Positions 4,413 through 57,700 of a stretch of 64,000 nucleotides of DNA are shown here, in pieces. The notes beneath the pieces are model-generated. The model had not been told where the DNA came from. It saw only the letters and a program-made list of their open reading frames with translations, and searched no databases. The position numbers and the translations under genes are program-made. Origin of the DNA: Octopus bimaculoides. Its lineage: Eukaryota. The stretch is taken from positions 41,553,536-41,617,535 of the forward strand of contig NC_069000.1 of NCBI RefSeq assembly GCF_001194135.2, read 5' to 3'. Numbering within the stretch: the first letter of the stretch is position 1; the number at the start of each line of letters is the position of its first letter.

Positions 4413-4716
4413 TTATTTACATTTGACGGCTATTTGTCCTCATCTTGTTTGTTGTTATCACAACATTTCTGCTGATATACCCTACAGGCATATGGCATAA
4501 TGGTTAAGAACACAGGCTATTAAACCCAAGATTCCGAGTTTGATTCCAGACAGTGATCTGAATAATAATTATAATAATACTGAAAAATACCTTAGGAATG
4601 AGAATTCTGGTTCGAAATTTCCCCAAGACACCTGGTGAAGGCTGGAGAGTATATCAGCCGAAACGTTGTGTTAACAACAAACAAGATGAGGACAAATATC
4701 CGTCAAATGTAAATAA
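4413..4716 (+). mobile_element. tRNA-headed SINE with hammerhead-like 3' module and inverted tail copy (copy 1)
   Basis: A box TGGCATAATGG and B box GTTTGATTCC at about 4492-4547; GACAC-CTGGTGA...GAAACGTT-GTGTT at 4627-4672; 4413-4483 is the reverse complement of 4646-4716. Confidence 0.75.
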
Positions 4717-5040
4717 TGTCCCCTAGTTTTTGTTTAGACATCTTTCTAGGAGAAGGAAGTTCTGAAATATCACCTGCCTTATTGCAAAGCTGGAGATCTT
4801 GCTCTCACTTGTTTTCTGAATTACTTGGCTTTGTTGGGGAGAGTGCCAGCAATGTTGTGCAAGTTGTCATTGACTTTAAATATTTGAATTTACATTGCTG
4901 ACAGCCATTGTCTTTAACATCTAGGATAAGATAATTTTTCAATGGTCATGTTTTTCTATTATATTTGTCGAATGTAAATAATGTACATAATCCCTCATCT
5001 CTTAAATATAGAATCAATTTGTTTTGTTTGTCTTTTACAG

Positions 5041-19533: not shown

Positions 19534-22500
19534 ATTTATGTGTGTGTGTGTGTTTGTGTTTGTGTCCCCAGCATTGCTTGACAACCATTGTTGGTGTGTT
19601 TACATTAGCAGTTCAGCATAAGTGACCGATAGAATAAGTACTAGGCTTACAAAGAATAAGTCCTGGGGTTGATTTGTTCGACTAAAGGCGGTGCTCCAGC
19701 ATGGCCACAGTCAAATGACTGGAACAAACAAAAAGAATAAAAGAAAATAAGAATTACCTAACTTACAAGAATATGGTGAAAATTTGCCAAGTGCTGCTAT
19801 GGACTATCACAACTACAGCCTGATACCACAACTGTTGTCGCTACCACCACTACCATACAATGACTGCAAGACTACTGCTATAACCCTCATTATTACCGCC
19901 CAACACTAACTCTAATACCACCACCACCACAACAACTAAAACCTCTGCCACTCCCATCATAACTGCCATCATTGGCACTGCAACCACTACTAATTCTACC
20001 ACCACCACTACAACATCAACAACAACAGCAACAACAGTGAAATACCATTCACAAGAATAAGAAATTCATGATGGAAATGAAGAAATTGCGGAAAAACAAA
20101 ACCTGGCTGACCTACCTTGCTACACTTTCTGTCTTCGATGATCTGCAGTATGGAATGGATTGGTTTCTCACGCTTCAGTTCGTCAAGGCCACTGTGGAGG
20201 GAGAAGAAGAAGAAGAAGAAGAAGAAGAAGAAGAAGAAGATGACAACTAGTGTCAGCATCATCACCACCATCATCATCATCATCATCATCAACCACCACT
20301 ACCCTCTCCTGCTCCTCCTCCTTTCCATCACCATCCTCATCACTTCACTTCACTAACCTCCTCAATGCTATTATCGTAACCACCACCACCACCTCCTCAA
20401 CACACAAAAAAAAGAAAGGAAGATGGACAAAAAGAAGAGGGGAGGCAGAATAAAAGGAAATAGAGGAAGAAGAGGAGGTGAGGGATAGAGAGGAGGCAGA
20501 GGTGGAAGGTTAGTAATTATGACAATCTCCACAACCACCACCACCAATAACAACAACAACAACCATCATCTCTGTTACAATTGCCATATCATAACTTTCA
20601 TCACAACTTTGGCCTCAGTGTTTTGTTTTCCCTTCCTCTTCTTTAACTCTTTCATTGCCAACCCGGCTCAAACTGGCTCTGAGTACAAATGTTTTGTTTT
20701 CATAAGTTCTGAATTAAAATCTTCCACCAAACCTTAGTCAGTGTCTGTTCCTAACACTAGCTGAATGATAACTAAATTATTTCACTAAATTCTTTGTTAT
20801 ATTTAAAATTAATTGAAAGAAACACAGAGCATCTCAACAGAAATATGGTAAGGAAAGGGTTAACCTTTTCACAAAACAAAAAGTGGAAGAAAGAGAAATA
20901 AATAAAAATTACTATAAATATTTAAAAAATATTACCACAATACCTTTCCAACTTTATAAGAATACAGAACAATGACAAGTATGCTTCCAAGAGATCGTGG
21001 TCATCAACATTGACAAATTCTGCTATCAAGTGGGGGCACATGTGAGACTGGAGAAGCAGCAAACTCACCCTGGAATTGAAACAATGGTTTGGAATTACTA
21101 GTTAGAGTTAAGGAGATTGTTTATTTTAACATGAAAAATAAATTATTTAACACTAACCCTGGGGTTTTGAAAGCAAACTTAAATTTTTGACACCAAAGTG
21201 TTTAACATTAAACCTGAAGTTTTGACACCAAACCAAAGTATTTAATACCAGACAAAAGTATTTGACACCAAACCTGACGTTTTTGACACTAAAATAAAGT
21301 ATTTGCATCAAACCTGAAGTTTTGACACCAAACCAAAATATTTGATATTAAACCTCAAGTTTTTGACACCAAACTGAAGTATTTAACATGAAATCTGAAG
21401 TTTTGACACCAAACCAAAGTATTTGACATTAAACTTATGTGCTTGACACCAAACCTGAGGGTTTGAAACCAAACTGAAGTTTTTGACAGCNNNNNNNNNN
21501 NNNNNNNNNNNNNNNNNNNNNNNNNNNNNNNNNNNNNNNNNNNNNNNNNNNNNNNNNNNNNNNNNNNNNNNNNNNNNNNNNNNNNNNNNNNNNNNNNNNN
21601 NNNNNNNNNNNNNNNNNNNNNNNNNNNNNNNNNNNNNNNNNNNNNNNNNNNNNNNNNNNNNNNNNNNNNNNNNNNNNNNNNNNNNNNNNNNNNNNNNNNN
21701 NNNNNNNNNNNNNNNNNNNNNNNNNNNNNNNNNNNNNNNNNNNNNNNNNNNNNNNNNNNNNNNNNNNNNNNNNNNNNNNNNNNNNNNNNNNNNNNNNNNN
21801 NNNNNNNNNNNNNNNNNNNNNNNNNNNNNNNNNNNNNNNNNNNNNNNNNNNNNNNNNNNNNNNNNNNNNNNNNNNNNNNNNNNNNNNNNNNNNNNNNNNN
21901 NNNNNNNNNNNNNNNNNNNNNNNNNNNNNNNNNNNNNNNNNNNNNATTTGTTCAACCAGTTTTGTTCAAATCAGCCAGGTCTGGCTTCTCACACCCAACC
22001 TACAATGTCATTTTAAAATTAAACAATCACATCAATGAAATCTCAAAACTGAGATAATACATGGATAATTCAAAACAATCATCATCATCATTGTTTAACA
22101 TCTACCTTCCATGCTAGCATGGGTTGGACGATTTGACTGAGGACTGGTGAACCAGAAGGCTGCACCAGGCTCCAATCTGATTTGGTAGAGTTTCTACAGC
22201 TGGAAGCCCTTCCTAACGCCAACCACTCCGAGAGTGTAGTGGATGCTTTTACGTGCCACCGGCACAAGGGCCAGTCAGGCAGTACTGGCAACGGCCACGC
22301 TCAAAATGATATTTTTTACATGCTACCTGCAGAGGAGCCAGTCCAGCGGCAGTGGCGACGACCTCGCTTGAATGTTTTGTGAATAAATAAGGATTACATT
22401 TGACAGAGAAATCTGAATGTTAAAGGGTTAAACGAGAATTCTGTGAGAGGTCTCAATGTAATAAAATTCAAACTAGACATCAACAGGTTCAATCTCACCA

Positions 22501-28900: not shown

Positions 28901-31900
28901 TTCTTGTTGTGGCCTCTTCATATTAGATGGCTCTAGCCCTCCACATCAGTTATTAGTGAACAGCACTTGATGTGACACATGGTGCATTCGGTTCTCTCTT
29001 GTCTGTCATTAACTACGCCTTCTCTCTGTCTGTGACTGTGTGATTGTCTTTTTTTTTTTTTTATAAACTGTGTTTAGCTCACTCACGATTTGACTGATTT
29101 GTAATCTACAAGTTTTGATTGGTCAGTATTTTTGCTGGAGTCAGCCAATGAAATTGATGTATAGTTTTTGAAAGTCATTGATAAGTTATACTGTTTTTTC
29201 ATGACATCATCAGTAAATCTGTTTAACAACTAAGTTATTTTACTAAATTCTTCAGTATTTTCAGAGTTAATTATGACAAAGGCAGTGTATTTCAACAAAA
29301 ATATGGTAACAAAAGGGTTAAAGTGATCTAAATTCATCAAAATGTCATGCTAATTTATGCTTCAAATCCCCACATAATAAAGGACAAAATCATTAAACTA
29401 AATTCTTCATTATTTTCAAAATTAATTGAAACAAAAGCAGTGTATTTGAAAAGAAATATGGGAACAAAAGGGTTAAATTAAAACCTTCTATCAAAATTTC
29501 ATGCAAATTTAAGTTCCAAATGCCAGCTTAATCATATACAACAATGACAAAATTATTTTGCTAAATTTTTAAGTATTTGCTAAATTAATTGAAACAAAGT
29601 CAGTGTATTTCGATAGAAATGAAGTAACAAATGGGGTATTTCATTATTGAATCTACCTTTGTATACAGATACAGTTTATTTTTATGTTATGTCAGAGTCT
29701 TTATTTAGCACCAAGGTAATCCCCTAGGGTTCAGTCGCTAAGAATTCAATCCCAAAGCAGGTAACACTGGTTTACATGATTACTAGTAACTAGCAGACAA
29801 TTTCTGATCTGACCTGATGAGCAACTGACTTTCTAGAAGAGGAGAGAAGGGAAAAAGCAAAGGAGAAGCATTGGACACCTACTTGAGACAGACTTTTGTG
29901 TATTTTCCAAGCAAGTTAGCAGTGAGTTTAAGTCCCGACTTGTCCTGTAATAAAAATAGAAAGCAACATTATTGTCATCCAGATCCAGCAAATCTAAGCT
30001 CATAGACGTTCCATCTGTGACCATCCTATCTTTTTCTCATCAGATATAGTGTATCTGAGACCACATTATCCATTGTCCACTTCTCTTTATTAAATAACAG
30101 GCTGCTATTTCTAGCAAGATTAACAACCATGTAGAGGATCCCACATTGGTTGATGCAGTTAAAAAGATAAGGGAATGGGAAAGGGGGTTAAATTTTTATA
30201 TAAAGGTTATATTTTAGGGGACAGCTTAGCTGTTTTATTAAGGAAGAGAGGATAATATTTTAAGGAATGACTATTTTAGGTAAGGATGGCTATATTTTAA
30301 GGAAAGGCTATATTATAAGGGCAAGGGCTATATACTAAAGGGAGAGCTATATTTTAAGGGAAGAGTTATATGTTAAAGGAGGGATAAATTATAAGGGAAG
30401 ATTCTATTTTAGAGGAAAGTTATATTTTAAGGGGAGCTTGTATTGTAGGAAAGAGCTATATTTTAAAAGGATCTATATTTTAAGGGGAGGGTTTATTTTA
30501 GGAGAGGGCTACATTTTAGGGAAGTGGACTGCTCAAAATTACATGCTGTTGTGTCTAGAAATCGAACCCTAACCACTGGGCCACATGCTAAGGTAAAGGT
30601 TGACCTACATCAGGATAGAGGTAGGAAAAAGAGAAAAAGTCTTTTTAGAACAAACATGAAATATATGATAATAGCAACAGCAACATCAACACTGAATGAC
30701 AACAACAATAAGAACAGCAACAACTACAACAAATGACAATTATAGCAAAAAGAAAAATGAAGGAACAAACAATAATAAGTAAAACAATTGTCATGACAAA
30801 AACAAGAACAACAAATGACAATGATGGAAACAGCAAAGACAATGGGACAACAACAAATAAAACAACAATAAACAATGACAACAACTTTATGACAAGGAAA
30901 AGTCAAAATGAAACCAAAAAAAAAAAAAAGAAGAAAGTAATACGTGTTACCTTGGTGTGTGATCTACAACTTAAAAGGGTAATTACTTTAGGTTATATTT
31001 TAGTTTACTTTTCAATTTCTAGAAAACCCTTAACCCTTTCATTACCAATCCGGATGAAACCGGTTCTGGCTCTGAGTACAAATGTCTTCTTTTCAAAAGT
31101 TCTGAATTAAAATCTTCCACCAAACCTTAGTCACAATTTATGTTCCTAACACTAGCTGAATGATAACTAAGTTATTTTACTAAATTCTTTGTTATATTTA
31201 AAATTAATTGAAAGAAACACAGAGCATCTCAACAGAAATATGATAACAAAAGGGTTAAAATATNNNNNNNNNNNNNNNNNNNNNNNNNNNNNNNNNNNNN
31301 NNNNNNNNNNNNNNNNNNNNNNNNNNNNNNNNNNNNNNNNNNNNNNNNNNNNNNNNNNNNNNNNNNNNNNNNNNNNNNNNNNNNNNNNNNNNNNNNNNNN
31401 NNNNNNNNNNNNNNNNNNNNNNNNNNNNNNNNNNNNNNNNNNNNNNNNNNNNNNNNNNNNNNNNNNNNNNNNNNNNNNNNNNNNNNNNNNNNNNNNNNNN
31501 NNNNNNNNNNNNNNNNNNNNNNNNNNNNNNNNNNNNNNNNNNNNNNNNNNNNNNNNNNNNNNNNNNNNNNNNNNNNNNNNNNNNNNNNNNNNNNNNNNNN
31601 NNNNNNNNNNNNNNNNNNNNNNNNNNNNNNNNNNNNNNNNNNNNNNNNNNNNNNNNNNNNNNNNNNNNNNNNNNNNNNNNNNNNNNNNNNNNNNNNNNNN
31701 CGGCAGGGGATGGTGGCGAACCCTGCTGTACTCTTTCATCACAACTTTCTCTCTCTCTTACTTCCTGTTTCTGTTGTGCCTGTAATTCAAAGGGTCAGCC
31801 TTGTCACACTGTGTCACGCTGAATATCCCCGAGAACTACGTTAAGGGTACACGTGTCTGTAGAGTGCTCAACCACTTGCACGTTAATTTCACGAGCAGAC

Positions 31901-32907: not shown

Positions 32908-35900
32908 CAGCATCAACATCATCATCATCATCATCATCATTACAGTCTTCAGAGCCAGCTGTTGCTGTATTATCCAGCAGTTCTACAGCATACGATGGAT
33001 AGCCATCTGTTTCAACATCATCCTTTCCAATGATGTCATTGTCATTATTGTTTGGTGCACAGGGTGACACAACCTGAAACAGCAAGAGGAACACTACATC
33101 ATTATCATCATGCTACCACCACCGCCGCTGCCACTACCATCATTCACCACCACCACCACCACCACCACCGTCACCCCTACCATCATTTCCACCACAATCA
33201 CTACTACCATCACCAGCATCACCCCCACACAACACACTTCCATATCCACCACCACTACATCATTTTTCCCATCACTAGCACACCCATCATCATAATCACT
33301 ATTATCGTCTTCTTCACAGTTGCCACCACTAACGACATCATCATCATCATCATCACTACCTGTCCCATCATCATCACAGCCAATGTTATTATCATCTCCT
33401 CCACTCGCACCATTTACTCAACTGTGCTTCATAACAGAAAAAGAAACATCAACTGGATCGGTTTCAAACCTGTGTTAGGACTTCATCAGCAACCATATAC
33501 ATGCTCCAACTGTCTGTGTCTGGGGAGATATCACTTGTGAACCCAGTATTAACACGGTCTTAAGTAAATCAGAGAGATTAAGTTTGTGAGGTAGTGGATT
33601 TAGACCAAAGAGCATGTAAGTTTTGAAAAAGAAGATGATCTCCTGTGTGCCAGTGGGTGTGAGTGATAGGGGATCTGGTGTTGGGAGCTAAGCTGGAGAC
33701 CAAGAGACATTGAGTAGAGAAATCAGCTGAGCAGAAATGGCAAGAGACAGGTGACCTGTTTCCAAGACAGATGTTTCTGATGTCCTCTGCAAATCTGTCA
33801 GACAATCAATAGCCATATTTGTCAAATGTGGATCAAATTACAGGGGAAAACACCAGAGCACACATATATAGCATTTAAACTGGCCATATCCAGTTCAAAT
33901 ATTCCACCGCTTGCAAGTTACTTGATGACCCCCAGTCCACACTGTCAAGTTGGTGTTTGGAAGAGCATCCGCCTGTAAAAACCATGCCAAAAAACAGGCC
34001 TCAAAAAAAAAAAAAAAACAGGTACCAGTGCCACATAAAAGGCACTCAGTCCATTCTGCAAAATGGTTGGCATTAGGAAAGGCATTCAAAACCCTGCCAA
34101 AACAGACAGTGAAGCCTGGTACAGTCTTCTGCCTAGCCAGCTCCTGTTAAACGATCCAGCATGGAAAATGGACATTAAATGATGATGATGATGATGCACA
34201 TGCTCAAACCAACCAGATCCAGCTTCTCATACCGACACTACATTGTCATTTTAAAAATAAACAATCATACTGAAACCACAAAGTAACAAGATAATGCATG
34301 ATTAATTCAAAACATTTGACAGAGTAATCTGAATGCTAAAGGGTTAAAAAACATAAACCCTTGGTTCGAAGGTGGAATATGAGGCTATGGGAATTCATGT
34401 GGACAATTTTAGCAATACAGAGGTTGAAATATGCTTACCTTTAGGGTCAAGATTTTGTTCTGTCCATCAAGGGATTGTGTGAGATTGGTAAACAATTCTG
34501 AGCTTTCACTGAATGAATGGCCTGTGTAGCAGGGCATGAATAAATAGATATATACACAGAGGAATTATTTAACGATCACTACCATCACAATAATAATAAT
34601 AACAACAACAATAATATTAATAATCCTTTCTGCTATAGGTACAAGGCCTGAAATTTGTGGGGAGGGAGTAAGCTAATCATATCGACTGCTACTTAATTTA
34701 TAAACTCCGAAAGGATGAAAGGCAAAGTCAACCTTGGCAGAATTTGAACTCAGAACATAGAGACGGATGAAATGCCACTAAGCTTTTCACCCAGCAAGCT
34801 AACAGTTCTGCCAGCTTGCTGCCCTAATAATAATGATAATGATAATAATAAAGGATTCAAATTTTGGCACAAGACCTGCAATTTTGAGAGAGGGGCTAAG
34901 TCAATTACATCAACTCCAGTGCATAGCAGGTACTTATTTTATCAACCCCAACAATTTCTAATGTAGCCTGAAGGAGAAGGTTAAACTCAGAACTTAAAAA
35001 TATATAAACTAATGAACACTAGCATATAAATGGTATTAGATTAATTGAACCCCTTAAGTGACAAAAGAAAAAATGGATAAATAAAAAAAAATTTTAATGG
35101 GCAATGCTAACTTTATCCCACGTGGGTGGGATTTGAACTTAGGAAATCTTGAAATGGAACATAAAACAGAAAACCAATAAAAGAAAGTAAAGAAGCAGTG
35201 TTAATAGTTTACCTGGCACTGGGCTGATATGAGCCAGGTGGCACCTGATCGCCTGAGCAGGGAGGCACATGAGCTGCTGTGACATGGTTCGAAGATCACT
35301 CAGTGGCACCGTGCCACAGTAACCATGGTCGACAAAATGGACATCGGCTTCGCTGTCAGTCACCTTCGTCAGCCGTACTCTGTGCCACCTGAATGTGGAA
35401 GGAGACACAGTTGTGGCATTTCATTATCAGTGTATAAAATTATCATTTGACTTATATACTTATTTCTTATACACTTTCTCCTCAACTTACGACCTACCTG
35501 ACTTATGACCATCCACACTTAAGACCACAAAAAATAGAAAATCCATTTTCGGACATTGGGCAGCCGCACGTATGACAATTATGGCAGCATCTGGCAACCC
35601 CTCAGATTACTGCCAGCCACTGTCTCTCACTCAGTTGCTCTCAAGCATCAGTTGCATTTGAATGAAAATAGTATTGAATGAAAATAGTATTGAATGAAAA
35701 TAGTATTGAATGAAAATAGTATTGAATGAAAATAGTATTGAATGAAAATAGTATTGAATGAAAATAGTATTGAATGAAAATAGTACATTGGCCTGAGGTT
35801 ATAGTAGAAGATGGCTCATCAGTCATCCTCCAAAAGATCAATTTCATGCTTATAACGAGGATAGGAGGCCGGTGCCCACCCCTACTCATTTAATGAGACC

Positions 35901-39471: not shown

Positions 39472-42400
39472 GTCCGTCTGTCTTTGTCTTTTCCACCATC
39501 GCTTGACAACCGATGCTAGTGTGTTTACGCCCTATAACTTGGCGGTGCAGCAACAGAGACCAATAGGATGAGTACAAAGTTTACAAGGAATAAGTCCCAG
39601 AGTCAATTTCTTTGACTAAAACCCTTCAAGGCAGTGCTCCAGCATGGCCCCAGTCAAACGACTGAAACAAGTAAAAGAATAAAAGAACACATATGCATGC
39701 ACCCTGAAGCATCTGCAGATACAGAAAGAGGTGTGTGTGTCTTTGTGCTTGATGCCCTCCATTGCTTGGCAACCGGTGTTGGTGTGTTTATTGCCCCGTA
39801 ACTAAGCAGTTTAGCAAAAGAGAACAAACAAATAACTACCAGGCCTGGAAACAAATAAGTTCTGGGGGACAATTTGTTTGATTAAAAGATTTCTTCAAGA
39901 CGGTGTCCTAGCATGGCCACATTTTAACTGACTGAAACAAGTAAAAGGTGAAAAATAATAAAAAGAGAAAATAGAAAATTAAAAATACAAAGAGAGAAAA
40001 ACAACTTACACGAACTGAATTTTTCCATACAACATCTTCGACTCGACCCAAAGATTCGTGTAAGAATTGGCCTGTGAAAATAAATTATTTACAACTAATG
40101 CAACCGAGTTTCACAAAGCAACACCAAGACAAAATGGCACTAACACACACACACACACACACACACAAACAAAACTCAAAAAATTTTTTAAGAAGAACGT
40201 TGCAATCAACAAGAAGGTGAATCTCAGCGATTCTTTTTTGTGCGCACAGTTTGTGACAAGCCATACTTTTCTTTTGCTGGGCTCAAATCTCATTTGAGGA
40301 ACCATGAAAACCAAACCTCCCCCAACCACTCTGCCCATATGTGTACACCTGTCGATGTCATATGGATGGACGGGCGGGCGGGCAGACAGGCAGACAGACA
40401 GATAGATAGATAGATAGATAGATAAAGATATGAACTTACAAAATTAGACCAGCGAACATCACAGTCGACTGGTTGGAGTCGACAGAGGAATATTTCTACA
40501 GCTTGGTAAGGCACACGAGCAAACTGGTCAGGTATTGTGTACAGATTGCAAACCGGGTGTTCTTCGGTCTTGCCAATATCAACAAAGAACAACTGGAGGA
40601 GAAGGAAGAGGGTGAAGAGAAGTGAGTACATGTTAAAGAAAGGTGGGAGGGAATTAGAAATAAAAGGAGAAATGGAGATGCAAAACGTAAAAGATACATA
40701 AAATACAATAAAACAAATGAACTTAAGTCTACTCACTGAAGGCTGACCAAGGGTTAAAGAACAACAACTACTATGATAACAATGATTATGATGATGGTGA
40801 TGGCCACAACACAACACTCAAAGGTCAACAAGCCCCGAACGTCCAGTGATCAACTTGTATATACTTACGGTCACTGTGTTTTTCGAAGCACAATTGTTCA
40901 GTTTAGACACCGTCACACTGTAAAGAACACAAAAAATGAAAATTAAAACTAAGAAGAAATTGATAGCAATCATACGATTGGAAATGGAAGGAAAGAAGTG
41001 CCACAGCAGCAGTTTCCCAATGTCATGTAACTCACACATAAAAAGCACCTTTCAAGTACTGGGCCTCACGGGGTCAATGTCCAATGACCAAGACCTTTGG
41101 CAATATGCCATGCTTGAGCAGAAGACGCATCAAGCCAAGTGACATCATAGTCATGGCTGATGCCAGTGTCATGTAACTGGCATCCGTTACACTCTGTAAA
41201 GTGGTTGGTGTTAAGAAGGACATCCAGCCAGAGAAAGCATGCCAAATCAGTCTGGAGTTTGGTACAGCCCCTCAGCTTACCAGCCCTGGTCAAACAGTTG
41301 AACCCATGCCAGAATGGACAACGGACATTAAATGATGATGATGATAATGATGATGACCTGTTCCTGCCATTCTCCACTCTATGAAATTAACCCTTTTGTT
41401 ACCATATTTCTGTTGAGATGCTCTGTGTTTCTTTCAATTAATTTTAAATATAACAAAGAATTTAGTAAAATAACTTAGTTATCATTAGGCTAGGAACATA
41501 AATTGTGACTAAGGTTTGGTGGAAGATTTTAATTCAGGACTTTTGAAAACAAAATATTTCTACTAGAGTCAGAGGCAGTTTCAGGTGGGTTGGTATCAAA
41601 AGGATTAAGAATTGTTTCNNNNNNNNNNATGAAATTAACCCTTTTGTTACCATATTTCTGTTGAGATGCTCTGTGTTTCTTTCAATTAATTTTAAATATA
41701 ACAAAGAATTTAGTAAAATAACTTAGTTATCATTAAGCTAGGAACATAAATTGTGACTAAGGTTTGGTGGAAGATTTTAATTCAAAACTTATGAAAAGAA
41801 GACATTTGTACTACAGAGCCAGAGCTGGTTTCAGCCAGAGCCGGTTTCAGCCAGAGCTGGTTTCAACCAGAGCCGGTTTCAGCCAGGTTGGTAACGAAAG
41901 GGTTAAAGAAATAAGCCTCTCCCTCCCCACATGGTTATTAACAAGAAAGCAAATATGAAGATTGCGTCCATATATAATTCTTCTGTCTACATCATAGAGT
42001 TGGACAAGTTTAACAAATGTTAAGTGTATTCTTCTTCTTCTTTGTCATCATCATCATTTAAGGTTTTGTGTTCCATGCTGGCATGGGTTGATGGAGCATC
42101 AGACTTACAGACAATATTAATAATTTCAAATCTTTCATGAAAAAAAAATGTGTCTGGCCATGGGGAAAATATTACCTGACTTGGAAACAGGTGAGAGTTT
42201 GTGACAGGAAGGGCATCCAGCCACGGGAAATCTGCCACAACAAATTCTGTCAGACCCAGTAAGTATGAGAAAAGTGGATGTTAAATGATGACGACGTCTA
42301 TAAATATATACATCATCGCTTAACAGCCACCTTCCATATTGGAATTATTCATTTATTCTATTATTTGTCTCAGTCACCTGACTGTGGCCATGCTGGAGCA

Positions 42401-45400
42401 CCACCTTCAGTCGAAGAAATCCACCCCAGGAATTATTCTTTGTAAGCCTAGTACTTATTCTATTGGTCTCTTTTGCCAAACTGCTAAGTTATGGGGACAT
42501 AAACATACCAACACCAGTTGTCAAGTGATGGTGGAGAGACAAAGTCACACACACACACACAGATATATACGACAGGCTTCTTTCAGCTTCCGTCTACCAA
42601 ATCCACTCACAAGGCTTTGGTCAGCCTGGGGCTATAGTAGAAGACACTTGCCCGAGATGCCGCATAGCGGGACTGAACTGGGAACCATGTGGTTGGGAAG
42701 CAAGTTTCTTACCGCACAGCCACGCCTGCACCAATGTGTGTGTGTGTGTATGTATGTACGAACATATGTATGTGTATGTATGTATGTATTGTGATACTAA
42801 TAAACTGGTATAGAACTCAATATGCATGTTTCAGAATGAAGCATTAGTCGAGTACAGAGCAGTATAAGAGAAAAAGAGATGACAAAGGCATAAACAATTA
42901 TCTTATGCACTTCATTAGTTTACTGCACAACTGTTTCTGCTGTAAGATGCAGTGGACTTCAAACATTCAAACATGATGTGCAATTTGGGTTTCATGTTTT
43001 AGGCTCTGATGAAGGTGTAAGATGTAACTCAGACACTGAACTAAGAGTTCACTGCATTCTCATAGTGGAAACGACTGTAAGCTAACAAAGTTCATAACAT
43101 AAATCATTTATTCTTTTGTCATCCCTTTTTTTCTTATATACATATGTGTGTCCAGACAGATGGATGGCTGGGTAGGTAGATAGATAGATATATATATGGA
43201 GAGAGAGAGAGAGACAGACAAACAGACAGATTAAAGCAGAGAAGAAAAGGCAAACAGTTTGCCGAGATTTGCCAAGGACATTTAACTTAGCTATAAAAGA
43301 CTTGCCTAACCATTTGCTTCTTCATTTCTGTTTTAATCTATACCTACCAGGAAGGCAGTGAGCTGGTAGAAACGTTAGCATGCTGGCAAAATGCTTAGAA
43401 ATGGTTAGCATGCCGGCGGTAAGCTGGCAGAACCATTAGCACGCCAGGCAAAATGCTTAGCGGCATTTCATCTGCCGTTACGTTCTGAGTTCAAATTCCG
43501 CCGAGGTCGACTTTGCCTTTCATCCTTTCGGGATAAATAAATTAAGTATCAGTTACGCACTGGGATCAGTCTAATCGACTGGGCTCCTCCTCTAAAATTT
43601 CAGGCCTTGTGCCTAGAGTAGAAAAGAATTTATACCTACCAGCTCAAGGGGAAGTCACTTCTAGCTGCTTTAGAAAGGCAGTCACAAAATCACATGTTCT
43701 ACTGCAGTTCAAACTAAAATTTTAGTGGCATACCTATTTGAGCGCTTAGAATGAACATCTATTCATTTGAATCACCCTAACACAAACACCTCCTATTTTA
43801 TATATATATATATTTATGTATATAAATACACATGTACACATATACATATATACATGCATAGCTATGTGAACACAGGCACCTATACATATATACATACATA
43901 CACAAAGTCAATTCTGTGAATGTGTGCCCACTTTGAATTACAAAAAGATACTAACCGAAAGAATCCTTTTGATGTGTTAACTGTACACAGGATTCCAATT
44001 TCCAGTTTCTCTGTGGGATAAATAATTAAGAAAAGAAACAAAGAGAATAACAATTAAATAAATATGCATGAAAAACAAGCAAACAATACATTTATTAATG
44101 TGCACTATTCTAATGTATATGAATGAAGACAGTTGCATCAGGAAGTGCCGATCTCTAATCGTGGAAAGAATGTGTGGAATAGGTAGATCCAGGAAGACAT
44201 GGGATGAAGTGGGAAGAAAGTCAAAGAGGGGATGACAGAGAACCAAGATTTCTAGAGGTTTGTGAGCAGCGCTCCAGCTGGCCAGCACCTGTCAAACTGT
44301 CCAACCCAAGCCAGAATGGAAAACAGACATTAAATGATGATGATGCTATTTGATTCTGCTAAGGTGGCATGCTGGCAGAAACGTTNNNNNNNNNNGCCGG
44401 GCGCGTCTGTCTTTACGTTCTGAGTTCAAATTCATCCGAGGTCATCTTTGCCTTTAATCCTTTCGGGGTCAATAAATTAAGTACCAGTTGCGTACTAGGG
44501 TTGATCTAATCAACTGGCCCCTCCCCCAAAATTTCAGGCCTTGTGCCTATAATAGAAAAGGTTATTTGATTCTACTGGTGTAGTTGGACCCAGAGATGTT
44601 TAACTGTATACGTGTGCCTTTGGGTGGGCATGTATTGGATTAACTGTGCTTGTATTGGTTTCAGTAGACATATATTGGCTTGAGTGGACTCATTGTCTTA
44701 AGTGGCCATGTGCTGATATGAGTCATGGTTCCAGTGGATGTTTGTTGGTTTAATCCTGTTGCACCATAGTCATGCTGCAGCAGGGATAGCCTAAACGTTA
44801 TCTCTACCGGATTCCCATTACAACATATGTAGTCAAAAAGATGATAAAATGTGAAAAAATAGACAACCAACCATGTTGCAACTTTGGAGTCAAAGTCTGT
44901 TTTTGACTCATTGTTAATGGTGTCCCTCAGGCTGTTGTTTATTTTTGTTTTTAATTGATAAAAACCAATTTCATTTGCGATGAAACAAGTGTGTTATAGA
45001 CCCAACATTTTGTCTGGTAAACAAGCAAGATGTAGACGCTTTGCAGTCGGGGAAATTATGGATGATATTTATTCTTTGGATGAAGAGTTTATGCTTGTGC
45101 AGACAATCAAAGTGATTTGGACAAGCAAACTGGGGAAAGTGTTGAGGAAAGTAATGATTTGGGTGAATAAGTATGGTTGTTGAGAGATGAGCCTATCATT
45201 GTTATTCTCCTGAATTAATTTGTGATTCTGTCCATTAGTTTTCTTGCAATCATTATTCTTGTGCTGTGTATGCAACTATTTATATTTTTACTCAGGAGCT
45301 TAAGTGGAGGGTAAAGTTAGGCATAGGGGACCGGGTGTGAGAAGGTTAAGCAGACGTGTTGGCCCAAGAGGACAGTTGTTAGCTTATGAGAACGTACAGG

Positions 45401-48011
45401 CTTGAGTGGACATGTATTGCTTTGAAGCAGATTGCTGTTTAGTGCCAGAGAGAGGATTTTAGTGGTGGTACTTGGTGTTACAATTACACATACAGTCAAC
45501 AACAGAGCATTTGGATAAATGTTAGAAACATTTATACACATTTCTAATTTCTAGTGGCACGTAAAAGGCACCTGTGCCAGTGCTGTGTAAGAAACACCCG
45601 TGCCGGTGCCATGTGGAATATGGCAAGGCAGGTTAACTAGCAAGTTAGTTTTTGTTTGTGGCAGATGTTCAGGTGCAATAAAGACTGCAAACAAACAGGA
45701 AACAACTTCTATCTCATTCCAGGGTGAAAAACTAGAGGTAGTCGATAGCTTCCGCTATCTGGGCGACCAAGTTAGTAGTGGGGGTGGGTGCGCTGAAAGT
45801 GTAGCTGCTAGAATAAGAATAGCCTGGGCAAAGTTTAGAGAGCTCTTACCCCTGCTGGCGACAAAGGGACTCTCACTCAGAGTAAAAGGCAGACTGTATG
45901 ACACATGNNNNNNNNNNNNNNNNNNNNNNNNNNNNNNNNNNNNNNNNNNNNNNNNNNNNNNNNNNNNNNNNNNNNNNNNNNNNNNNNNNNNNNNNNNNNN
46001 NNNNNNNNNNNNNNNNNNNNNNNNNNNNNNNNNNNNNNNNNNNNNNNNNNNNNNNNNNNNNNNNNNNNNNNNNNNNNNNNNNNNNNNNNNNNNNNNNNNN
46101 NNNNNNNNNNNNNNNNNNNNNNNNNNNNNNNNNNNNNNNNNNNNNNNNNNNNNNNNNNNNNNNNNNNNNNNNNNNNNNNNNNNNNNNNNNNNNNNNNNNN
46201 NNNNNNNNNNNNNNNNNNNNNNNNNNNNNNNNNNNNNNNNNNNNNNNNNNNNNNNNNNNNNNNNNNNNNNNNNNNNNNNNNNNNNNNNNNNNNNNNNNNN
46301 NNNNNNNNNNNNNNNNNNNNNNNNNNNNNNNNNNNNNNNNNNNNNNNNNNNNNNNNNNNNNNNNNNNNNNNNNNNNNNNNNNNNNNNNNNNNNNNNNNNN
46401 NNNNNNNNNNNNNNNNNNNNNNNNNNNNNNNNNNNNNNNNNNNNNNNNNNNNNNNNNNNNNNNNNNNNNNNNNNNNNNNNNNNNNNNNNNNNNNNNNNNN
46501 NNNNNNNNNNNNNNNNNNNNNNNNNNNNNNNNNNNNNNNNNNNNNNNNNNNNNNNNNNNNNNNNNNNNNNNNNNNNNNNNNNNNNNNNNNNNNNNNNNNN
46601 NNNNNNNNNNNNNNNNNNNNNNNNNNNNNNNTAAAAGCACCCACTACACTCTCTGAGTGGTTGGCGTTAGGAAGGGCATCCAGCTGTAGAAACTCTGCCA
46701 AATCAGACTGGAGCCTGGTGTTGCCATCCGGTTTCACCAGTCCTCAGTCAAATCGTCCAACCCATGCTAGCATGGAAAGCGGACGTTAAACGATGATGAT
46801 GATGATGATGATGATGCCTGTACCATGTAAAATGCATCAGTGCCAGAGCTGTGTGCACACCACCCAGTGCCACTCTTTACAGTGGTTGGCATTAGGAACA
46901 GCATCCAGTCATAGAAGCCAAGTCAAATTAGACTGAAACCTGGTCAAGATCTCCAGCTTGCCAGCCCTGGTCAAGCTGCTCAACCTATACCAGCATAGAA
47001 AATGGATGTTAAATGATGATGATGATAGGTTTTTAAATAGAAACATATTTTTTAAACTTAGCAGTTTGGCAAAAGTGACTGATATAATAAGTGCTGAGAG
47101 GTCATTTGTTTGTCTTAAATTCTTCAAGGCAGTGTCCCAGTATGCTCACAGACTAACGACTGGAACAAATAAAAGATAAAAGACATGTAGATACTATAGT
47201 TAGAAGTATAAAATGCCGTAGAATATTGAGTACCTATGGAATGAAATATTTGGTTTCCTTTTCATATACCAATTGTTTGGTTCTTCCAGACAAGCTTTCT
47301 TTCCTACCTCAGTGCATTTTAGAAAAACAACTCTGGCTAACCACATCAAATTCAAGATAAAACAAATGATGAAAATGAAAATAAAATGACAAAAAAAAAA
47401 GACCTTACCCAAAGGTTTCTTGTTGGCCGGATCACAAAAGTGGGTGGCCATGCCGAGTGTAAGACTGGCCAAATCACTATGGACAGCAACAGACTTCTTT
47501 TGGCCTTGCCAGATTTCCAAGATCCTCCCAAAGAAGTGACTGGCTGACTTCACATGGAGGACCATAATCTGAAAGGTAAATATAGAAGAGATAACATGGA
47601 GAATTCCACAAGGTGACTCCACATGGGGGACCATAATCAGAAAGGTAAATACTGAAGAGATAACATGGAGGACCATAATCTGAAAGGCAAATATAGAAGA
47701 AATAACATGGAGGACTCTTCATGGAGGGCCATAATCTGAAAGGCAAATACTGAAGAAATAACATGTAGGATTCCTCATGGAGGACCATAATCTGAAAGGC
47801 AAATATTGAAGAAATAACATGGGAGGACTACAATCTGAAATGTAACAGAAATAAAGAACAAAGAGAGACATTATTTACATTTGACAGATATTTGTCCTCA
47901 TCTTGTTTGTTGTTTACACAACATTTCAACTCATGTACTCTCCACCCTTCATCAGGTGTCTTGGGGAAATTTCGAACCTGGGTTCTCATTCCTAACGTAT
48001 TTTTCAATATA

Positions 48012-48045
<34 letters not shown>

Positions 48046-48741
48046 TCACTGCCTGGAATCGAACTTGGAATCTTGGGGTTAGTAGCCCATGCTCTTAACC
48101 ACTACGCCATATGCCAGTGGGCAACAAACAAGATGAGGACAAATATCCGTGAAATGTAAATAATGTCCATAATTCCTCATCTCTTAAATATAGAACTAAA
48201 AGCTAGAGGCTTTCTCATGGAGAAGTGTAATCCGAAACAGAACTACAGGTAAAATATGTGGAGGGCTTAAAATGGGGTTAGGCTTTGCATTATCTTATTC
48301 TGCTCCTCGAAACAAGGCAGCAATTTTTTAAACTTTTTATTCTGGTGAGGAGTAAGATGTTTATAATTGACTAAATGTCAAGCCCCCAGTTCATGAATGG
48401 TATTTCATTTAGCCCTAACCACAACCCTTACAACAGTGATGGAGAGTAAAGTTGACTGTCATTGTGGGATTTGAACTCAAAATGCAACCAGAGCCATGAC
48501 CAATAACACAACGAGCAGCAGCAGCAGCAGTAGTAGTAGAATAACAGCAGCAGTAGCAGCACCTGCACCACCACCACCACCACCACTACTAATGCTTACA
48601 ATATTATCATTAGTACAAGCCAACGAGGAAGCACCTCACTGTGGTTGCTCCAATGGCTAAAAATAGCAGCCAAATTTATCTACTATTTTAAATAAAAAGG
48701 GAAGCAACATAGGATAATGTACTCTCAGGTCCTCTATTATG

Positions 48742-48774
<33 letters not shown>

Positions 48775-49570
48775 ACATTGTTTTAATAATGTCCGCTTTT
48801 CCATACGCACATAGTTGAGATAGAGTTCGTTGAGGCAATTTTTTTCTATGGCTGGATGCCCTTCCTGTCACAAATCCTCACCTGTTTCCAAATAAGGTAA
48901 TACTCCTCCGTGACCAGCTACGCTTTACCGGGAAGATTGGAAACAAAGGACACCGCCTGTATGACAGTGGCACTCATTTACAACTGCCATACAATGTCAA
49001 GACAAGGAGACACAAACACATGAATATTCATGTATGCATGTTTGTGTGTATATGGATGCATGTGTATATGTGTGGGGGGGGATGTATGTGTATGAGTGTG
49101 TATATGTATGCATGTGTGTATAAGTGTGCACACATGCATGTGTATGCATATGTATGCATGTGTGTGGAGGGATGTGTATGCATGTGTATATGTGTATGTA
49201 TGTGTAAATGTATGCATGTGGTTATATGTATGTGTATGTGTGCATAAATGCATATGTGTATATGTATGCACGTGTGTGGAGGGATACATGTGTATGCGTG
49301 TGTATAAGTGTGTATGTGTGTGGGGGTGTATGTGGGGAGTGTATGTGTATGTGTGTATATGTATATATGTAACAGGTGAGGGTTAGTGACAGGAAAGGCA
49401 TCAAGCCATAGAATACATGCCTCAGCAAATTCCATCTGACCATTGCAGGCATGGAAGACTAGACATTAAAAAAATGACAATAATGATGGTGGTGGTGGTG
49501 GCGATAATGGTGATGTTGTTGATAATGATGATGATGCTCTTGATGGTGGTGGTAGTGGTGATGGTGGGCA

Positions 49571-49618
<48 letters not shown>

Positions 49619-52600
49619 CTGGTGGTGGTGGTGGTGGTGGTGGTGATAATGGTGATGGTAGCGGTGGTGGTGAAGATGGTGACAATGACAATGGTGGTGG
49701 CAGCGGCAACGACAACGATAGTGGTGGTGGTGGTGGTGGTAGCGGTGATGGTGTTGATGATGATAATTGTGATGATAATGATGATGATTATGACGACGAC
49801 GACGACATCACTTACCCTCACATCTCCTTGATTAGGCAACAAGATGTGTTCGTCACTGCATCCATTCAAATCAACCTCTGGCAAAACGCTATGGCGCTGG
49901 TTGCAGTTGGAACAGCTCCTGAAACAGACAGAAGCACAACAAATACAGTCGTTACGGAACAAGAGAAGGAAGAGGTGTAGGAGAGGTGGACGGTACGAAT
50001 TGATACGCATAAGGAAGGTCCACTGGTCGATCCCACATGCAAATAACTGAAACAGACAAAAAGAATGAACCATACCTGCATTTTCCATACATTTTAATGT
50101 TATAACACAGAGCATTATCTGGGTTCCGTTCGTTCTCCTGGAAAAGAAAATAATAATGATAATAATAACAACAACAACAAGAGCACTCAGAGAGCGCAAA
50201 CCTCTGCAAAGGCAACACCAACGTTCTCTCAATGATTAGCCGGAGAGGAATTTTAAAATGAGAATATTTGAAATAAACTTGACTGCTCTCACAAATGAGA
50301 ATACTAAAAATGAACCTGACCGCTCTCAAAAATTAAGTAAAAAGAATCGGAAAAATAATCCGGAATCCTTGTCCGGTACTTGATCGATCCCAATGGTAGT
50401 CATGGAATATGAAGGTGGCTGAAGAAAATTTGGTAACAGTAATAAATAGTTTATCCTTATCTCATACAAGCCAAAGTTAACAAATTCACCATTCAAAATA
50501 GTTTCAAAGGTGGAGGTAATAATGATAAGGTCTAGTCAGGTATTTTTAAATGAATAGCATGAGACCTTTTCGTTTTCTCTTCTCTTAAATTCCGGCCTTC
50601 CTTTAGTATTCCTGCTGTTTTAGATTGATGTATAGATGTATGTATATATGTAAGTATACTATAGAGTGTTAGTGTTATTTAATTTCTGAACGGTTTTGCT
50701 GCCATTTGTTTATGTAGTTTGATTTCTTTCTCCGTCATTTTCTACGAAGATATAGACGCGAGTAAAATTAATAATAGAGAAACAAAAATAAAAAAATCTA
50801 GGAAGTCTAAAGGAAGATGATGACTGTGAAAGACTTGAAAGTTAACATAAGATCATAATCATGAATTAATGCAGAATGCAGTAGCAGGATACAGTGTTAG
50901 AATAAGAAGAGAATGCAGTGGCAGAATGAATACTTACTTCTTGTATTACAGAGAAAAATTTGATGGTTTCATCCCTATGTTGACCGCTGCTGTTGTTCAA
51001 CAATAAAGACTTTAGACTTTTCACTTTCTTTAAATCCATCTTACTCATCAGTATGTAAGATTTACCAAGTCGCAAAGGCACCTGGGAAAAAAATAATGCC
51101 TCAAATCTTTAAGTCAAATGAGAAAGAAGTCCCTATATGGTTTTTAGACATGCTAAAAATAACAACTAATACACGTACTAATCAGGTTCTTAGAAAATTG
51201 AAGAACAAAGTGAATATTTCAGTTTTAGTCTGTCGTTACCAATTGTCACTGAATACTCAGAGTGGCTGAATAGTTTAAGATGTTTGCTTTGCAACCACGT
51301 AGTCCTAGACTCAATCCTGCAAGGTGACATCTTGGGAAAGTGTCTTCAACCACAGTCGTGAACTGAACCAAGGTTTGTGAATGAAACTAGATAGATGGAA
51401 ACTGTATAGAAGCCTGTCAGATGGGCTATCATCAGCAGTCATGCCACGTGCATGGATCCCTGTGATTCTCAGTCACCATCCAATTCTTTGAATTGGGAGC
51501 CTGAGTCGTGATGATTCTTTCATTAGCTGATTACACAATCATGGACGCTGCCCTTATGGGTGAGCTGCAGTTACTCTGTTGACAGAGCTTAGTTCTCCTG
51601 ACCCTTGATCTTCTAGCATCAATCTAAGAAGAGTACAGTTGGCTCAGTTGAGCCCTTATGCTGTTTCTTCTCAATCTGTTACACTGTAGTCCTAAGTGGA
51701 ACAAATGTTAGGCTCTGCCAAAAGGCAGCCCGTAAATATAAGGGGCACAAACGTCACTCCATGAGGTATTTTCAAAATATTTGCATACCCGTAGATGGAC
51801 TATAACTCAATTTAAAAGTCGAACCTCATCACAGACTATGGATGGTTAAATTATAACAGTTATTATAGTGCATTGTTGTGCCATTCAAGACACATTATTT
51901 TTTACAAATAATATACAATGCTTCAAGCAAACTACAATACTCTCCTATTTGTTACTAAGTGATTTGAATATAAACTTTACACCAAAATATGATAATTTAT
52001 GTTCTAAATACTTGTGCAATCCTTTTGATACAAATCCAACTATAACTGCCCCTAGTTCTATTATACAAATTTCCTGTTTCAAAAAAGATTTTAATTTAAA
52101 CCAGCCAACAAATTTTATGTTAAATTATGTTCCAAATACCAAAGGAAAGACACACACACACACACACACACAATGTGAATGTACAATACATGTATGTATG
52201 TATCGTATGTATATACATACATATGTATGTGTATGTCTGTGTGTCTGTGTTAGTCAAACCCCACCACTGTTTAAGAACAGGTGTTGGTTTGTTTACACCT
52301 CTGTAACTCAGCGGTTCAGCAAAAAAAACTGATACAATAAGTCCCAGATTTAAAATAGAGTGATAAATAAATACTGGGGGGGGGGTCAAACTGTTCGAGT
52401 GAAACGCTTGAAGACAGTGCTCCAACATGGCCAGAGTCCAATGACTGAAGCAAGTAAAAAACAAAAAAAACAAAGTAAAAGATTGACAGAAAAAGACAAA
52501 CAACAAACAAATAAACAAGAGAAAGTCTTCCGGTTATTAATCTGTACTTACCGTTTTATCATTGTAATGGGGATAATATTTACTCATTGTCTGCATTCTT

Positions 52601-54770: not shown

Positions 54771-57700
54771 TGATGATGATGATGATGATGATAATAATAA
54801 CAACAATAACAACAATCATAATGATGGTCAATGATGGTCATCAAAAATGATAATGCAAAGATCCTATGGGACTTTATGATTCAGTGCGACCATGAGATAG
54901 AGAATAGGAAACCAGACATAGTGTTAATTGAGGAAGAAAGCAAATGATGCCAGATCATAAATATAGCATGCCCAGCTGATAACANNNNNNNNNNATCCTT
55001 TCGGGGTCGATTAAATAAGTACCAGTTACGCACTGGGGTCAATATAATCGCCTTAATCTGTTTGTCTGTCCTTGTTTGTCCCCTCTGTGTGTAGCCCCTT
55101 GTGGGCAATAAAGAAATAGGAAACTCTACAATATACAGTAGCCCATCATGTATACTGATGTGTGTGTGTGTGTGTGTGTGTGCATTCCTTGTTTTGACAT
55201 TGTCAACTCTGCCATGAAAAGTAATGTCCAGCAAATTGTACAGTCTGTCGTGTGAAAGCCATGGAGAATAAATACCACACTGAGAAACAAGAGTTGGTGA
55301 CAGGAAAGGCATCCAGCGCTAAACTGAATGTGACACTAAGAAGTCTCACTCAACTCCTGATCTCAGCCTAGGAAAATTAATGGTGGTGGTGGTGATGATG
55401 ATGGTGGTAGTGATGATGTTGGTGGTGGTGGTGGTGGTGGTAGTGATGATGTTGGTGGTGGTGGTGGTGGTGATGCTGATGGTCATGGTGGTTGTTGTGA
55501 TGATAACGATGATGGTGATAGTGATGGTGGGTAGTGATTGTGGTGGTGATGACGAGCATGACAACAACGATGCTGGTGATGACAATGACATTCTTCCAGG
55601 CCAAACAGAAGACATAATGGTCTCCAGCTCCCCAGACCTCACAAAAGTGTACTGTATCACCGACACTACAACTTCTGTAGTAACGGTTTGTGTTGATGAG
55701 GAAGGAGCATAGGAGAAGAGGCAGAAGAGGAGGAGATGTACTTACAAGTAAAACCTTGTGACAACTCTGATCCCCATCGGTGAAGATGATTACTTTCTCG
55801 CCTTGGATGGTCAGGTCAGGAAGAAGTTCGATTAGTTTCCTCTCACGGCCATCTTCTGTTGTAATCATTGGAATCTGAGAGAAAAAAAAAAAGGAAAAAA
55901 GAGTGAGAGAGGGAGAACAAGAGAGAAAGAGAGAGAGAGAGTAGGAGAGAAGGAAGGAGAGAAAAACAACATGTCGAGAAAATAGAAACTTATATCTGGA
56001 TATGTGAAACATAACTGCTTCCCAAGGTCACATGTTTATTATCAAGGTCATGTTTTATCAAGGACATATGCTTTATTATCAAAGTCGTATGCTTTGTTAT
56101 CAAGGTCATATGCTTCACTATCAAGGTCATATGCTTTATTATCAAGGTCAACGGTTTCATTATTGAGTTCACATCTAACTGCCAAAGTGCCTCACATCTA
56201 ACTTGCCAAAGTGTATCTAAGTACCAAAGTGCCTTGCAATGGGACTGAACCTAGAACAGTGTGGCTGGGAAGCAAACTTCTAACCACACAGACATGCCTG
56301 TACCAAATGTTAACCCTTCATTTTGTTACCATATTTCTGTTGCAATACACTACTTTTCTTTCAATTAATTTTAAAACAAATGAAGAATCCAGTAGAATAA
56401 GTTTTCAATTATAAAGCTGGAATAATCTTTTCTACTCTAGGCACAAGGCCCGAAGTTTTTTTTTGGGGGGGGGGGGCAGTCGATTAGATTGACCCCAGAA
56501 TACAAGTAGTACTTAATTTATCGACCCTGAAAGGATGAAGAGCAAAGTAGAAGACACTTGCTCAAGGTGTCACATAGAAGGACTGAACCTGAAACTTAGG
56601 AGTCACACAGTAAACTTTTTAACCCACAGCCATGCTTCGCTACGCCAGCACACTCATTCACACAGACCACACTACACTACATGGTAATCACTATTTGAGA
56701 TTACAGTCTCCAATTCTACACGAATTAGAGACTGTAAAGAAGAAATAAAATGAAAGTAAACTGCATCTAACTCACCTGTTTAACTCGGCCATAGATGGAT
56801 GCTTCTATCATGTCCGTAATGACAATAACAACATCCTCCAGTGCATTCATGGCAAATGTTCTGACATGAGACGTCCATTTACTACCAAAGAGCATCACCT
56901 GGTTTTGCAGGTTAGATCTCTGTTTCGAGAGCAGCACTTGCTTCTTCAGGGACCGCATAAGATCTCGAATCTGTAATGAAAAACAGAAATAAAATAAAGG
57001 TATGATGACATACACATTCATTCAGAAAATCTTCTGGCACATTTGGAAGTGATTAAGTCATGGGCTGTTCTTTCTCACCATTGGAGAACAACTCCTTTCA
57101 GGTAAGCATGTGTTCCTAATGCACTTGATTCCTTAGAGTGAGGGAACTTTGGGACACTTGGTGTTTCAACATTGCTGTATCTCCTCAGTCAAAGCTACTC
57201 TGGACTAATGAATCTAACAACTTTTCCTTTCAGATGAATGTGTGTTCATAATACATTTGATTTATTAATATAAGGAGATCTTGTGACACCTGGTGTTTCA
57301 ATATCATTGTACCTCCTCAGTCAAGGCTAACCCAGACTAATGAATCTAACAAGAATAGCAATGAACATATACAAGGTGAGTTCAAAAAAATGTCTGACTT
57401 TATTTTTAATTGTTTCTCTATTATATATATTTTAACCCTTTTGTTACCATCTTTCTGTTGAGATGCTCTGTGTTTCTTTCAATTGATTTTAAATATAACA
57501 AAGAATTTAGTAAAATAACTTAGTTATCATTAAGCTAGTGTTAGGAACATAAATTGTGACTAANNNNNNNNNNNNNNNNNNNNNNNNNNNNNNNNNNNNN
57601 NNNNNNNNNNNNNNNNNNNNNNNNNNNNNNNNNNNNNNNNNNNNNNNNNNNNNNNNNNNNNNNNNNNNNNNNNNNNNNNNNNNNNNNNNNNNNNNNNNNN

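Follow-up and report, generated by a model that had tools for sequence, protein, structure and literature searches.

Which of several tandemly repeated splice acceptors serves a Tudor-domain exon, and what becomes of the remaining copies, is the question raised by a locus of Octopus bimaculoides. The locus lies in a stretch of 64,000 nucleotides (contig NC_069000.1, positions 41,553,536 to 41,617,535; hereafter the window), within the gene for an orthologue of TDRD12, a germline factor of the PIWI-interacting RNA (piRNA) pathway. Coordinates are counted from the first base of the window, and the gene and the array are read on the minus strand. The favoured explanation, with a probability of about 0.6, is that the array is a lineage-specific minisatellite spanning the intron-exon boundary, a mutational by-product in which the last copy works and the upstream copies are pseudo-acceptors probably leaking unproductive mRNA. 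An earlier note on this DNA had proposed that the competing acceptors tune the dose of TDRD12; judged from the sequence, this functional account appears more likely to be wrong than right.

Structure of the duplicated acceptors

A regular-expression scan of the minus strand for the motif (Y)AG/ATTATGGTCCTCCATG (the slash marks the exon boundary) or a close variant returned exon starts at 47834, 47791, 47735, 47679, 47637, and 47568, where no occurrence was expected by chance. The six positions given in the earlier note were thereby reproduced exactly. CAG precedes five of the six copies, and the copy at 47637 carries CTG, which confirms the change of AG to TG described there. The junction-spanning 22-mer TTTCAGATTATGGTCCTCCATG matched the window five times at up to three mismatches, always within the array (0.00 matches expected, 100 shuffles). 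Divergence is greater in the sixth copy (47834; ATTGTAGTCCTCCCATG), which has one C inserted and a different intron part. Tandem Repeats Finder detected a period of 56 (47664-47829, 2.9 copies, 90% matches) and an overlapping period of 42 (47621-47715, 2.3 copies, 88%). The repeat analysis thus supports the view that the acceptors are true duplicates. The sites listed earlier are correct; two further CAGs behind pyrimidine tracts, with exon starts at 47749 and 47651, had been missed.

When cut at the exon starts, the units measure 43, 56, 56, 42, and 69 nt and are followed by the real exon. Their common core consists of 26 intron bases (TTATYTCTTCWRTATTTRCCTTTCAG) and 16 exon bases, and the 56-nt units contain a 14-nt internal duplication of TCCTCCATG. 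The duplicated exon part, put at 16 bases before, holds as the common core but extends further in three units, reaching about 26 nt in the 69-nt unit (ATTATGGTCCCCCATGTGGAGTCACC, compared with ATTATGGTCCTCCATGTGAAGTCAGCC in the exon itself). Across copies 2-6, identity among the 42-nt modules is 85.7-97.6% (mean 91.4%), and in each of these copies a GTTAT resembling a branch point is combined with a pyrimidine tract and with the first 16-26 bases of the exon. Copy 1 has in common with them only TTTCAG and the diverged exon part, its intron side being the native intron end. Unit 4 ends in CTG, and the AG of the next copy is thus lost; the 3' part of unit 5 provides the GTTAT motif, the tract, and the CAG of the acceptor at 47568.

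Such a structure would have arisen through repeated tandem duplication, by slippage or unequal exchange, of a 42-69-nt segment across the intron-exon boundary. As the segment that was duplicated reaches across the boundary, ancestral intron context would be retained in the first copy and ancestral exon context in the last. The five upstream copies would then be intronic pseudo-acceptors, four of them still with an AG, while copies 2-6 would each form a self-contained 3' splice-site module. About 15 minisatellite arrays with a period of at least 16 (range 16-155) were found in the window, several of them inside TDRD12 introns, so that one landing on a boundary by chance is unremarkable. Given this background, a mutational by-product is the simplest reading. 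The coordinates of the array and of the adjoining TDRD12 exons are listed in Table 1.

Table 1. Features of the acceptor array, the adjacent repeat, and the neighbouring TDRD12 exons, in window coordinates.
Feature	Coordinates	Strand	Description
Exon upstream of the array	49816..49918	-	Second half of CCCH zinc finger and linker ...LLPNQGDVR; phase 0; acceptor tgtttcag/GAGCTG
Donor GT	49814..49815	-	AGG/GTAAGT; phase 0; intron of 2,247 nt to the authentic acceptor
Interspersed repeat, about 300 bp	47867..48167	-	46-nt terminal inverted repeats, internal tRNA-like stretch, (AAT)n run
Native intron 3' end with outermost acceptor	47835..47866	-	Tract tctctttgttctttatttctgttacatttcAG; matrix score 9.6; TTTAT, A at 47852; read as ancestral intron end
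Unit 1, 43 nt	47792..47834	-	Most diverged (ATTGTAGTCCTCCCATG...); frame-shifting acceptor, stop at 47777
Unit 2, 56 nt	47736..47791	-	Acceptor 47791 frame-shifting, stop 47479-47477; extra cttcAG, exon start 47749
Unit 3, 56 nt	47680..47735	-	Acceptor 47735 frame-shifting, stop at 47639
Unit 4, 42 nt	47638..47679	-	Acceptor 47679 in frame, +37 aa; extra cttcAG (47651, out of frame)
Unit 5, 69 nt	47569..47637	-	Own acceptor dead (TG); about 26 exon bases duplicated (ATTATGGTCCCCCATGTGGAGTCACC)
Predicted authentic Tudor-domain exon, 160 nt	47409..47568	-	IMVLHVKSASHFFGRILEIWQGQKKSVAVHSDLASLTLGMATHFCDPANKKPL; donor TGG/GTAAGG at 47408
Probable next exon, Tudor core (IGILCTVNTSKGFFRLVSF)	43931..43999	-	Weak: permissive tblastn E 13-20, motif GxxCxxxxxxxFFRV; approximate boundaries
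Exon, C-terminal part of the same Tudor domain (VDIGKTEEHPVCNLY...QAVEIFLCRLQP)	40413..40592	-	Pfam TUDOR E 5.9e-05, profile positions 86-119; tblastn E to 2e-11

The interspersed repeat upstream of the array had been called a short interspersed nuclear element (SINE) ending about 35 nt before the outermost acceptor. A repeat is indeed present, and its end at 47867 lies 31 nt upstream of the outermost AG, but it is not a plain SINE, because it has terminal inverted repeats: self-BLAST aligned 48167-48122 with 47867-47912 in inverted orientation at 95.7% identity, and a plain SINE has a tRNA-derived head and no such termini. The termini of the family read GACATTATTTACATTT...GTTTGTTG, and two more copies were found in the window (4413-4720 and 17200-16931). 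ARAGORN predicted no tRNA and Rfam gave no match in the repeat, while a tRNA-like stretch is visible by eye. The element looks like a miniature inverted-repeat transposable element and, given the tRNA-like stretch, may be composite.

Other repeats occur along the gene. Minisatellites are very dense in the window, examples being the arrays at 35658-35785, 21192-21488, 29235-29611, 50255-50333, and 56023-56150; among the minisatellites are a perfect 16-bp array of eight copies and a 37-bp array of two copies just upstream of the zinc-finger exon. The intron leading to the array starts, directly behind GTAAGT, with extended triplet runs of the (GTC)n/(ATC)n type (49460-49815, minus strand), which on both strands translate as open frames of poly-Asp, poly-Val, or poly-His. 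An open reading frame (ORF) on the plus strand (45600-45907) resembles by eye the C-terminal part of a retroelement reverse transcriptase and runs into a run of N (45908-46631) inside a TDRD12 intron.

The conserved junction and the frames of the other acceptors

The gene is a mollusc-type TDRD12 orthologue, which combines a DEAD-box helicase and Tudor domains with a CCCH zinc finger and an end homologous to CS. The helicase core was recognized by Pfam (DEAD, E 6.1e-13) in exon translations from 61510-58707, and tblastn also matched window exons to the helicase regions of orthologues. Tudor domains follow C-terminal to the helicase (Pfam TUDOR, E 5.9e-05 for the exon at 40592 and 1.9e-17 for the exons at 36710 and 35388); the orthologues have three TUDOR stretches. 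An exhaustive HMMER scan retrieved relatives of about 2000 aa, the top matches being 36-40% identical, and their sources label those from scallop, abalone, oyster, and Dreissena as 'putative ATP-dependent RNA helicase TDRD12'. These relatives align collinearly with window exons from beyond 61510 down to 14916, with high-scoring segment pairs collinear over orthologue residues ~610 to 1990, from the helicase to the CS region. The exon at 15086-14916 aligns to oyster residues 1935-1991 and overlaps the oyster Pfam CS domain (1903-1976); taken alone, this 57-aa exon has no Pfam match. An N-terminal Tudor domain before the helicase would fall past coordinate 64000, outside the window. The identification as TDRD12 made in the earlier note is thus borne out by the Pfam domains, the names of the relatives, and the collinear exons.

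The zinc finger CYNIKMYGKCRSCSNCNQRH (C-x8-C-x5-C-x3-H) is split over the exons 50137-50086 and 49918-49816 on the minus strand and sits between the helicase and the Tudor domain. Pfam is silent on it, and its Cys/His columns are conserved in the aligned TDRD12 sequences of molluscs, a sea star, and ticks.

Only splicing to 47568, the last copy, gives the junction conserved in the orthologues, which makes this site the predicted authentic acceptor. From there the exon reads IMVLHVKSASHFFGRILEIW..., and the junction GDVR/IMVLHVKSASHFFGRILE (GDVR/IMVLHV...) aligns without a gap to 15 TDRD12 orthologues from molluscs, a sea star, and ticks. Their pattern after the zinc finger, G.V(K/R)(V/I).V.HV.DASHFYARILE, is likewise ungapped. 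This alignment agrees with the earlier statement that the exon begins a Tudor domain, and the donor proposed at 49815 was confirmed as a GT at 49815-49814 in phase 0.

Translation from every alternative exon start reproduced the frames and stop codons reported before (47834 stopping within 20 codons, 47791 running to 47477, and 47679 adding 37 aa) and supplied those of the other sites. Splicing to 47834 would shift the frame and reach a stop at 47777-47775, which is codon 20. Both 47791 and the extra CAG at 47749 are frame-shifting and run to a stop at 47479-47477, and the same holds for 47735 (stop at 47639-47637) and the extra CAG at 47651 (stop at 47639). Three sites are in frame with 47568: 47679, which would insert 111 nt or 37 aa (IMVLHVISSVFTFLIMVPHVESPCGILHVISSIFTFQ); 47637, which is unusable without an AG; and a weak GAG site at 47616, which would add 16 aa. 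The stops at 47777, 47639, and 47479 precede the exon end at 47409, and at least eight more exons lie downstream of the Tudor exon, so that the premature stops stand before later exon junctions, as in alternative splicing coupled to nonsense-mediated decay (NMD). A functional isoform carrying the 37-aa extension was rejected: the extension is hydrophobic, repeats the first beta-strand motif, and has no counterpart in any of the 15 orthologues.

Strength of the sites and competing explanations

The acceptors were scored with a crude position weight matrix (PWM) built from 13 other acceptors of the TDRD12 gene. In calibration, real sites ranged from 0.4 to 15.1 (leave-one-out), and the 95th percentile of all AGs in the window was 5.2. 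The highest score was obtained for 47834 (9.6), followed by 47735 (6.7), 47679 and 47568 (6.4 each), 47651 (5.0), 47749 (4.7), and 47791 (3.2). Judged by their sequence, the upstream acceptors match the authentic site, and the outermost one appears better. The outermost acceptor had been described as having the longest pyrimidine tract, in agreement with its best tract and best score here. In copies 2-6, GTTAT stands 23 nt upstream of every main AG with no effective AG between, and each unit has its own AG-free stretch of 35-48 nt. No RNA structure masking the upstream sites was found, and none of the sites was set apart in this respect (z = -0.87). An array acting as a cassette exon was rejected, no strong donor-like GT being seen inside it by eye (unscored), and recursive splicing was rejected since no GT follows the AGs.

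Several of these observations weigh against predominant splicing to 47568. The outermost acceptor outscores it (9.6 vs 6.4), is transcribed first, and has the sole strict yUnAy motif (TTTAT) within acceptor range, 17 nt upstream of its AG. The PWM is based on just 13 sites, all from the same gene, and the predominance of 47568 is derived from protein conservation and not from splicing signals. Use of the first AG after the branch point is a predictive rule (PMC1431707), by which a branch in an outer unit would commit splicing to the AG of that unit; the concern about competition is therefore legitimate. The rule comes from single 3' splice sites with distant branch points, whereas the array consists of tandem full modules.

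Under the favoured explanation, splicing to 47568 would predominate, aided by the short distance to the donor and the richness of the exon sequence in purines, and the upstream sites would probably leak a minority of frameshifted, NMD-eligible transcripts. The array would be tolerated, since enough productive mRNA would still be made. Use of any upstream site by 5% or more of the transcripts is predicted at slightly better than even odds.

A comparison with a related species bears on the constraint acting on the gene. Contigs from SRR11869385, SRR11869391, and SRR11869394, evidently from such a species, match the window at 88% identity across a single TDRD12 exon with its flanks (contig L001, 511-1000, aligned with window 57220-56730). 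Within this region, 10 of 198 exon nucleotides differ (seven synonymous and three nonsynonymous by our own alignment count), as do 36 of 248 flanking intron positions. The TDRD12 gene is therefore under purifying selection, and enough productive mRNA must be made. The mean divergence of the array copies (8.6%, compared with 14.5% between the two species) suggests that the amplification is younger than the split from the sister species but not recent, so that the sister species would be predicted to have a smaller array or none; this age is a rough estimate, the sequences being short and gene conversion possible. We infer that the array is neutral to mildly harmful, the product of a minisatellite-prone genome and not a tuned regulator.

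An alternative is that the outermost or other upstream acceptors dominate, which would make the allele a strong hypomorph, either as a deleterious variant in the sequenced individual or as early decay of the gene. The best tract, the best PWM score, the sole strict branch motif, and the earliest transcription of the outermost site would all agree with it, as would the first-AG rule. This explanation is nevertheless unlikely: every TDRD12 exon that could be detected in the window is open, in an order collinear with that of the orthologues; the exon has diverged less than the intron, with synonymous changes prevailing (seven to three); and differences of 2-14% among copies 2-6 indicate that the array is not of very recent origin and has persisted in a gene under constraint.

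About equally improbable is a role of the upstream copies as unspliced decoy 3' sites, at which unproductive binding of U2AF/U2 or of pyrimidine-tract proteins would slow removal of the intron or favour its retention. Decoy acceptors and exons occur elsewhere, as in caspase-2 In100 and in the decoy exons of erythroblast intron retention, and the modules in the array are complete (branch-like motif, tract, and AG) with UCUU-rich tracts in each unit. Against such a role, neither a stable RNA structure nor any other special feature was found (z = -0.87).

Still less probable is the adaptive splice rheostat of the earlier note, in which the competing acceptors would yield normal, 37-aa-extended, and NMD-targeted mRNAs, and an individually variable copy number would set the dose of TDRD12. 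In its favour, four AG-bearing upstream modules are nearly identical to the authentic one, and three upstream sites are frame-shifting with early stops ahead of many downstream junctions, which would lead to NMD if molluscs follow the vertebrate junction rule. Minisatellites are also typically length-polymorphic, the human F7 array having 5-9 repeats (PMC1557585). However, the copies have decayed unevenly, one having lost its AG and copy 1 being diverged by an indel and a different tract, and the many unrelated minisatellites of the region indicate that arrays arise readily. The in-frame 37-aa product is without a counterpart in the 15 orthologues. In donor-side equivalents, the pseudo-sites are silent, only the authentic donor being used (F7, LMNB2, and PDGF), or only the two nearest are used as well (IFI6 and CBS) (PMC1557585). 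Loss of TDRD12 sterilizes vertebrates: germ cells fail in zebrafish, and men are infertile (PMC5485951, PMC13495564). A large drain on the TDRD12 mRNA would thus matter, and a variable drain is likelier to be a cost than a means of control. A shade more doubtful again is the extended form of this idea, in which TDRD12 pre-mRNA would be diverted in dependence on copy number, so that the repeat number would set the capacity of the piRNA pathway, and hence transposon control or fertility, in each individual.

The least likely alternative is an assembly artefact. The draft sequence of the window is rich in gaps, with 14 runs of N, and assembly from short reads can give repeats a wrong size. However, the units are of different lengths (43, 56, 56, 42, and 69 nt), differ in 2-14% of bases, and are each uniquely placeable, the nearest gap (45908-46631) lies ~780 nt past the donor end of the exon (47409), and assembly errors normally collapse identical repeats and do not generate diverged ones.

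Searches for transcripts, other individuals, and related arrays gave no further instance. In a word-indexed collection of 5.8 billion proteins, the 90-aa extended exon had no candidates, a 529-aa composite of the gene had generic DEAD-box matches only, and the six-frame ORFs of 47150-47900 had no match; these negatives are weak, as the search is non-exhaustive and missed the 77-aa protein P0145, which is 89% identical to part of the query and was found by HMMER. The sister-species contigs reached through P0145 cover the exon at 57220-56730 only, not the array region. Exact-sequence look-ups of four window ORFs returned no record, and the species seems to be absent from the searchable collections. 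The junction motif had no match in a metagenome scan.

Comparison with known systems

Whichever way the upstream sites behave, the locus calls for caution in annotation, as automated models could choose any copy and report a frameshifted or insertion-bearing TDRD12. Use of the upstream sites would give an essential germline gene a built-in and possibly variable mRNA drain. If they are silent, the array would be a clean substrate for learning how the spliceosome selects the last of several equal sites, against scanning or first-come rules. The locus also lends itself as a natural model in which to study how 3' splice sites are chosen.

The upstream sites, if used, would resemble the 'poison' sites of alternative splicing coupled to NMD in shifting the frame and placing stops ahead of downstream junctions; established cases are conserved and often autoregulated. 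In CFTR, the amount of functional mRNA produced is altered by a length-variable (TG)m(T)n repeat in intron 8, which lies at the acceptor of exon 9. The repeat of CFTR is located at an acceptor, as in TDRD12, but is a simple-sequence tract modulating one acceptor, whereas the array described here consists of duplicated acceptors. NAGNAG acceptors, like the TDRD12 sites, are tandem AGs competing at one intron end. Their AGs lie 3 nt apart, share a branch point and a tract, and always keep the frame (PMC3250501), whereas the spacing in TDRD12 is 42-69 nt with a module for each site, and the array does not belong to this type.

The closest likeness is to the boundary-spanning minisatellites that reiterate donors, known from human F7 IVS7 (37 bp, 5-9 copies), IFI6/6-16 intron 2, CBS IVS13, LMNB2, and PDGF (PMC1557585). 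As in the F7 type, the repeats stand head to tail, one monomer extends across the exon-intron boundary, and an authentic site lies beside a row of pseudo-sites; the splice consensus is repeated intact, the CAG being kept in four of the five upstream copies. The known cases, however, are 5' splice sites downstream of an exon, while the TDRD12 array is composed of complete 3' splice-site modules upstream of one, in an invertebrate host and in a gene for a germline piRNA factor. By its architecture, the TDRD12 array is thus the acceptor-side mirror of the donor minisatellites; no other acceptor-side example was found in the literature searched, which is not proof that none exists. Should the upstream sites be silent, this would be a natural mirror of F7 with four intact pseudo-acceptors and one dead one before the real site. 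Both kinds of array raise the same question of how one site is chosen, but the authentic site of F7 is the first to be met in 5'-to-3' scanning, whereas that of TDRD12 would be the last, so that a first-come rule would pick the wrong site.

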